Shown here: piece by piece, positions 18,003 to 18,567 of the stretch | How the letters are laid out: the number at the start of each line of letters is the position of its first letter | Position numbering within the stretch: position 1 is the stretch's first letter | Source: Lepidodermella squamata | Taxonomy: Eukaryota; Animalia; Gastrotricha | Reading direction: 5' to 3' | DNA: 64,000 nucleotides | Assembly (NCBI GenBank): GCA_047495785.1 | Contig: JBLDXI010000029.1 | Location: forward strand, 744,001 to 808,000 | Made by a program: the position numbers and the translations under genes | The notes under the pieces: model-generated | Database searches by the model: none | What the model saw: the letters and a program-made list of their open reading frames with translations, nothing else | What the model was told of the DNA's origin: nothing

Positions 18003-18567
18003 ATGCGTATCGCTTTTGCTTTGACTGTTGCTGCCCTGGTGGCTCTTGGTAAGAATTAAACGGAAATCATGGCATTTCATCGTAAACACTTCGATTGTTA
18101 TCACAGCTTTCAGCGAGGCTGAGGCCGGCCGTGGCAAGCCGAATAAGGAAGTTTCCCGAAGCTACTCGTACAGCGTCTCGAAGAGCGGCTCGTACCAGAA
18201 GAACAAGCGGCCGGCGAAGAACTTCGGCAAGAATTTCGTCTCGAAGCGCAACAAGCGCCGCGGTTCCTACTCCAAGTCGGTGTCTTCGTCGGTGTCCGCC
18301 CGCACCAACAAGCACACCCGCAAGGTGTCCAACAAGAAGTTCATGCGCGTGCACCAGCGCATGTCCAAGTCTGGCTCGTACTCGCGATCGGGCTCGTTCG
18401 GCGGCCGCAAAAACAAGCGTCACGGCAAGTTCAACAAGAAGGCTGGGCACAAGAAGTTCGGCGGCAAGCGCAACAAGGGTCGCAAGGGCCACAAGAGCGG
18501 CAGCTACTCCGCCTCCAACAACTTCTCGTACAGCGTCGCCGTCGAGACTGGCGCCGCTCCCCAGTAA
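18003..18567 (+). CDS. Secreted Ser/Lys/Arg-rich basic protein, 168 aa, copy A (exons 18003-18048, 18107-18567)
   Basis: Signal peptide MRIAFALTVAALVALAFSEAEA formed across a phase-1 GT-AG intron; strong C/G-ending codon bias; three near-identical copies with intact frame; AATAAA at 18674. Confidence 0.88.

Follow-up and report, generated by a model that had tools for sequence, protein, structure and literature searches.

The closest described counterparts of the gene reported here come from four systems. In caddisfly H-fibroin, [(SX)nE]m blocks are set between Gly-rich spacers (PMC13267644), and the silk contains Ca2+-cross-linked phosphoserine beta-domains (PMC4929942); a further report puts fibroin genes at more than 20 kb (PMC9693786). 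In diatom silaffin-1 the repeat R5 reads SSKKSGSYSGSKGSKRRIL, and phosphorylation of its Ser together with modification of its Lys yields a self-assembling zwitterion (PMC3806462). Sabellariid tubeworm cement pairs the polybasic proteins Pc-1/2/4/5 with the polyphosphoserine protein Pc-3 (PMC4275877). The flatworm protein Mlig-ap1 carries positively charged KR regions, and charge-based cohesion has been shown experimentally in the duo-gland system to which it belongs (PMC6410801). Recent phylogenomic analyses suggest a position of the gastrotrichs close to the flatworms (PMC6468455).

The gene analysed here lies in a 64-kb stretch of the genome of the gastrotrich Lepidodermella squamata, which is called the window below. 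Its predicted product, to which we refer as the Ser-stripe protein, is a Cys-free 16-kDa chain that joins a Ser stripe of the silaffin or caddisfly kind to a polybasic segment of the kind seen in flatworm glue. Its size differs from those of all four compared systems by one to two orders of magnitude and, judged by its sequence, it belongs to none of them. The protein would join a known kind, that of convergent low-complexity biomaterial proteins, and is itself without detectable relatives. With moderate confidence, we read it as a secreted, disordered, polycationic structural protein of a lineage-restricted multi-copy family, serving in cuticle or scale, in the egg shell or in duo-gland glue. 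Gastrotrichs, like flatworms, use duo-gland organs; in the literature searched we found no protein component of gastrotrich cuticle, scales, egg shell or adhesive. Four other readings (a defence protein, a granule counter-ion, a peptide precursor and a non-functional ORF) appear less likely than an extracellular material, and are weighed below beside the evidence that bears on them.

Gene structure and predicted product

The gene is present in three copies, A, B and C, all of them intact, encoding 168 aa and identical in exon structure within the 64-kb window. Copy A has its ATG at 18003 and a TAA stop at 18565-18567, and its reading frame closes only after removal of a 58-nt GT..AG intron. 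The features of the three copies are as follows.

18003-18048, plus strand: copy A exon 1, with the ATG and most of the signal peptide
18049-18106, plus strand: copy A intron, 58 nt, GTAAGA...CACAG, 34% GC, with an in-frame TAA
18107-18567, plus strand: copy A exon 2, covering the last part of the signal peptide and all of the 146-aa polycationic Ser-stripe chain, through to the stop
18674-18679, plus strand: copy A poly(A) signal AATAAA, in a context (GAAATAAAAT) common to all three copies
50354-50917, plus strand: copy B, 168 aa, with exon 1 at 50354-50399, a 57-nt intron at 50400-50456 and exon 2 at 50457-50917
26815-27378, minus strand: copy C, 168 aa, with exon 1 at 27378-27333, a 57-nt intron at 27332-27276 and exon 2 at 27275-26815
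17894-17919, plus strand: copy A promoter block CGATAATTAGCTGATTTGCTATAAAT, 26 nt, with a TAATTA core and a TATA box at 17913-17918
50245-50270, plus strand: copy B promoter block
27460-27485, minus strand: copy C promoter block
17953-17970, plus strand: copy A leader block GTTTTGCGCTTTCATCAG, 18 nt, exact in all three copies
50306-50323, plus strand: copy B leader block
27407-27424, minus strand: copy C leader block

The 26-nt promoter block is exact in the three copies and absent elsewhere in the window, with 0 chance matches expected; it stands out within a 5' flank that is otherwise 68-72% identical between A and B/C. The leader block is pyrimidine-rich, ends in CAG and lies 33 nt upstream of the copy A ATG; it resembles a splice acceptor, and is a candidate 5'UTR element or spliced-leader acceptor. 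In copies B and C the intron, of 57 nt, keeps the reading frame and contains no stop, so an unspliced mRNA would be read through, with 19 additional residues inside the signal peptide; a look-up of the exact product of the copy B read-through ORF found it not to be on record.

The CDS of copy A (507 nt) gives a product of 168 aa, composed of a 22-aa signal peptide and a 146-aa chain. The N-terminus reads MRIAFALTVAALVALAFSEAEA, followed by GRGK. It is signal-like, starting with MR and continuing with a hydrophobic core of 13-15 residues and AEA before the cut, with Ala at -3 and -1. Both the signal peptide and its cut site were judged by eye, and on that basis we agree with the 22-aa signal peptide proposed in an earlier, sequence-only reading of the same DNA, which suggests that the product of copy A would be secreted. 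The hand-counted composition given there proved exact when the residues of the mature chain were tallied again: 28 S, 26 K, 15 R, 17 G, 12 N, 7 Y (4.8% of the chain), 7 F, 5 H and 2 E, with no D, C, L, I or W. The mature chain has a net charge of +39 and a pI of 11.8. Run on an alignment of the three paralogues, AlphaFold predicted a disordered chain (mean pLDDT 53.8, pTM 0.13), in which the single weak helix falls in the spacer NKKFMRVHQRMS. This looks like a real gene for a secreted, block-patterned protein.

The search for homologues called for in that reading was run and found no relative, so that no characterised non-structural family was matched. No Pfam family matches the product, and the ESM Atlas gave no usable match. 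A word-indexed search of 5.8 billion protein clusters gave no match at E <= 0.01 or at E <= 10, and exhaustive phmmer (HMMER) over 1.84 billion representatives gave 0 matches, as did the sequences of the PDB. The JGI metagenome contigs likewise contained no match, either to protein patterns or to a degenerate DNA pattern.

Conservation and duplication of the three copies

Between copy A and copies B/C, exon 2 is 95-96% identical; the intron is 47% identical and unalignable, the 5' flank 68-72% and the 3' flank 51-55% identical. The splice sites, the TATA box, the ATG and the poly(A) signal are retained in all three copies. Pairwise dN/dS values among A, B and C are 0.18-0.22. There are 37 variable sites, 23 of them at third codon positions and 14 in the 66-nt signal peptide, and the signal-peptide changes are conservative hydrophobic swaps (A/V, V/M). 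These comparisons point to purifying selection on the three paralogues; to all appearances the gene is real and maintained by selection. Synonymous codons are identical at 143 of 155 positions, compared with 96.6 expected at codon-usage equilibrium; either gene conversion homogenising the exon or very fast turnover of the non-coding parts would account for this excess, and gene conversion may inflate the apparent constraint.

A sceptical reading would see here no functional protein gene, just a GC-rich open ORF in a tRNA-linked cassette, or else a nuclear protein of the protamine or H1 type whose hydrophobic N-terminus arose by chance. It could draw on two further long ORFs overlapping the same GC-rich stretch and on the duplication of the cassette together with Pol III genes. 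The concentration of substitutions at third positions (23/37) and the dN/dS of about 0.2 argue against it, as does the retention of the splice sites, TATA box, poly(A) signal and ATG despite diverged introns and flanks. The conservative changes have also kept the N-terminus hydrophobic, and a signal-like N-terminus that is mostly encoded by exon 1 and kept in all three copies does not fit a protamine- or H1-like protein. We consider this reading very unlikely, and keep to that of a secreted structural protein.

The two overlapping ORFs run across the GC-rich exon at 18095-18640 (plus strand) and 18067-18597 (minus strand). Both were rejected as coding frames because the substitutions concentrate at the third codon positions of the proposed frame.

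The three copies are accompanied by tRNA genes, located as follows.

17023-17104, plus strand: tRNA-Ser(UGA), upstream of copy A
17473-17546, plus strand: tRNA-Lys(UUU), upstream of copy A
17618-17690, plus strand: tRNA-Glu(UUC), upstream of copy A
49393-50067, plus strand: tRNA-Ser, tRNA-Lys and tRNA-Glu, next to copy B
27668-27884, minus strand: tRNA-Lys and tRNA-Glu, next to copy C, whose cassette is without tRNA-Ser

In a local self-comparison with 17309-17405, between tRNA-Ser and tRNA-Lys of copy A, masked, the cassette of A (17020-18602) matched that of B (49390-50953) at 86%, and the cassette of C (26758-28034) matched that of B at 93%. The duplication unit begins at tRNA-Ser and stops 35-55 nt past the stop codon; in the window, the protein gene duplicates only as this compact cassette of 1.3-1.6 kb with its Pol III genes. 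Duplication of a protein gene and Pol III genes as one unit is unusual. The idea that the tRNAs serve as a codon supply, tempting for a protein rich in Ser and Lys, was rejected, since tRNA-Lys(UUU) and tRNA-Ser(UGA) mismatch the preferred codons (AAG for Lys; TCG, TCC and AGC for Ser), and we therefore read the linkage as hitch-hiking in one duplication unit.

Codon usage in the gene is strongly skewed, with a GC3 of 0.83, AAG as 96% of the Lys codons, and TAC and CAC as 100% of those for Tyr and His; GC in the intron and flanks is 34-39%. The skew would fit heavy expression, a suggestion and nothing stronger, and the high GC3 is no proof of it because some neighbouring exons are also GC-rich. 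Exons at 1-500, 2701-3100, 6101-6600, 8201-9000 and 15201-16100 reach 60-68% GC, compared with a window mean of 42%, and the ORF at 15250-16074 has a GC3 of 0.82. Strong heterogeneity of GC3 between genes is thus a general feature of this genome, which the Ser-stripe gene shares.

Ser-X blocks, basic spacers and known biomaterial proteins

The earlier description of four alternating Ser blocks separated by K/R-rich spacers was borne out: the four blocks could all be located, with a short FSYSV in addition.

Residues 32-45: Ser-X block 1, SRSYSYSVSKSGSY
Residues 69-80: Ser-X block 2, SYSKSVSSSVSA
Residues 102-113: Ser-X block 3, SKSGSYSRSGSF
Residues 146-153: Ser-X block 4, SGSYSASN, with the short FSYSV after it

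Of the 28 Ser, 24 lie in the blocks, together with 6 of the 7 Tyr; the spacers, made of Lys, Arg, Asn, Gly, Phe and His, account for 36 of the 41 K/R and for 6 of the 7 Phe. The segregation of Tyr and Phe between blocks and spacers has a Fisher p of 0.03. When the mature chain was shuffled 20,000 times, the 20 S-x-S pairs observed were reached by none of the shuffles (5.1±1.9 pairs), and the longest alternating run, of 7 Ser, was equalled in 15. At the DNA level the internal repeats of the modules are weak, 60-79% alike over 13-34 nt, so that they do not form a recent tandem array.

The likeness to caddisfly H-fibroin lies in this alternation of Ser-X blocks, in which X is hydrophobic or basic, with basic spacers that contain Gly. 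Both proteins would be secreted in fresh water, and phosphorylation of the Ser face would give Ca2+-bridged beta-domains. The two differ in scale, with 168 aa from a 507-nt CDS here against the product of a gene of more than 20 kb in the caddisfly. The Ser-stripe protein is also without the block-closing Glu and the Cys-bearing termini of the fibroin, its spacers are mainly Lys, Arg and Asn, with Gly secondary, and the phyla are unrelated. No homology to H-fibroin was detected in either of the two protein libraries, even at E <= 10. The sequence-only reading had cautioned that the blocks lack the S-x-E site that primes Fam20C, and rightly so: S-x-E and S-x-D both occur zero times in the chain, and no Glu follows any block.

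With the silaffin repeat R5 the Ser-stripe protein has the hexapeptide KSGSYS in common; KSGSY occurs three times in the chain, and block 3 contains SKSGSYSRSGS. The likeness extends to the composition in Ser, Lys, Gly and Tyr, to the basic clusters after each Ser-rich unit and to the secreted precursors. Looking for tandem units of the silaffin KSGSYSGSKGSK type, we found the three KSGSY, yet the internal repeats are no closer than the weak DNA similarity given above. Silaffin-type RRIL/RRNL sites do not occur either, the chain having no RR[IN]L and only KR, RR and one RNKR. The Ser-stripe protein appears to differ from silaffins in being without a crisp tandem repeat, and its host is an animal without known silica. 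As no homology is detectable, the resemblance is probably one of compositional convergence.

Mlig-ap1 resembles the Ser-stripe protein in its extremely positive, low-complexity sequence rich in Lys and Arg, in being secreted and in having no database homologues. It is very large, with KR regions of more than 3,600 aa and with C-type lectin and vWD domains, whereas the Ser-stripe protein has 16 kDa, no Pfam domain, and Ser stripes. The cement of tubeworms offers a further parallel in its repetitive sequences of limited amino-acid diversity, its pairing of polybasic and polyanionic components and its sites of Ser and Tyr modification. There, the basic and the phosphoserine functions reside on separate proteins, whereas the Ser-stripe protein has both motifs on one chain; we found no homology between it and the tubeworm cement proteins. 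An adhesive, silk or cement appears a reasonable analogy for the Ser-stripe protein, and the defence reading is weaker.

The defence reading takes the polycation, either uncut or in fragments released at its dibasic sites, to kill or agglutinate bacteria through contact with their anionic envelopes, in the manner of histatin or protamine. A gastrotrich presumably lives among bacteria and feeds on them, and the net charge of +39, the 5 His together with Phe and Tyr, and the six dibasic sites, with the furin-type RNKR (residues 63-66; the one R-x-K-R in the chain), would all suit such a protein, as would the helix weakly predicted in the spacer NKKFMRVHQRMS. The dibasic sites had been taken earlier to fit an antimicrobial-peptide precursor. 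This did not hold up: the sites do not delimit repeated peptides, the fragments between them being dissimilar in sequence and length, and the chain has neither acidic pro-regions nor a repeated mature peptide, with 2 Glu in all. Why the Ser stripes should be so strictly conserved is not obvious if the protein attacks membranes, and no AMP family was matched in Pfam or by phmmer. A defence protein is in our estimate unlikely.

The same sites could belong to a protein from which secreted signalling peptides are released by cleavage at KR or RR, in some cases after Gly for amidation, for which the KR, RR and RNKR sites and the GKR at FGGKR could be cited. The dissimilar fragments and the scarcity of Glu weigh against a neuropeptide precursor as they do against an antimicrobial one. 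Acidic spacers are lacking, no peptide motif recurs from one site to the next, Pro comes directly after one KR, and the codon bias and the three near-identical copies fit bulk production better. A signalling-peptide precursor is in our estimate highly improbable.

A possible extracellular material and the neighbouring genes

As a strong polyelectrolyte without acidic balance or Cys, the chain cannot fold or associate with itself unless a counter-charge is supplied. We infer that its Lys/Arg/Asn/Gly/Phe spacers, which hold 36 of the 41 basic residues, would bind a polyanionic partner, for which sulfated or carboxylated glycans, phosphoproteins and anionic lipid lamellae are candidates. Binding of this kind could bring about a dense phase by complex coacervation. 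Within it, the four (Ser-X)6-7 stripes might form two-faced beta-strands that zip the molecules together, one face being all Ser and the other made of the X residues Tyr, Val, Lys, Gly and Arg. The Ser-flanked Tyr are possible sites of oxidative cross-linking. Given that Tyr makes up 4.8% of the chain and that the paralogues have another residue at two of the Tyr positions (Y35F, Y45H), such cross-linking cannot depend on every Tyr.

Phosphorylation would add a further mode of assembly. The charge arithmetic of the sequence-only reading is sound, in that modification of ~70-75% of the Ser would neutralise the +39. The chain would then become a near-neutral polyampholyte, a zwitterion like that of caddisfly silk or silaffin, able to self-assemble with divalent cations. 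This step is speculative, because the chain offers no S-x-E to prime a Fam20C-type kinase.

The spacer chemistry would serve equally well in a protein that acts as a counter-ion in granule packaging, condensing a polyanionic cargo in secretory granules and being released with it, with no structural role. The extreme and unbalanced positive charge, the near-absence of acidic residues (2 E) and the predicted disorder are what such a protein would need, and tubeworm cement offers a precedent, its polybasic proteins being stored in granules with a sulfated macromolecule (PMC4275877). This explanation leaves the conserved two-faced Ser-X stripes and the segregation of Tyr and Phe unaccounted for, and we rate it as improbable; it overlaps with the main explanation, and the sequence by itself cannot separate the two.

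The structural reading has a bolder form, which we put forward tentatively and regard as rather doubtful. The family would be the first known molecular component of any gastrotrich secretion, with an independently evolved, single-chain, phospho-switchable design of (Ser-X)n blocks and polybasic spacers, and it would build the non-chitinous cuticle or scales, a water-hardening egg shell or the duo-gland glue. In one variant of this idea, the protein would be an extracellular counterpart of myelin basic protein, gluing together the stacked, membrane-like lamellae of the gastrotrich epicuticle. Whichever the material, the Ser-stripe protein would lend itself as a model of charge-driven underwater assembly in fresh water, and would be a clear example of biomaterial proteins converging in design.

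The neighbours of the gene in the window are of metazoan type, and include a CYP2-like P450, a GABA-B-like GPCR and a Cys-loop channel. Those with coordinates, and the local repeats, are as follows.

51276-52718, minus strand: CYP2-like P450, in two long ORFs
58954-61365, plus strand: GABA-B-like class C GPCR, an ORF of 803 aa
58071-58416 and 62297-63451: diverged partial copies of the GPCR, 74-77% identical in DNA
36311-36991 and 37246-38480: a pair of dispersed local repeats
32114-32302 and 38627-38823: a second such pair, identity across the two pairs being 76-91%

The best public match of the P450 is 42% identical (amphioxus, fish, sea urchin and crab), and the tardigrade match is 35% identical. 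At 42% identity for the best match, no sampled phylum is close to the host.
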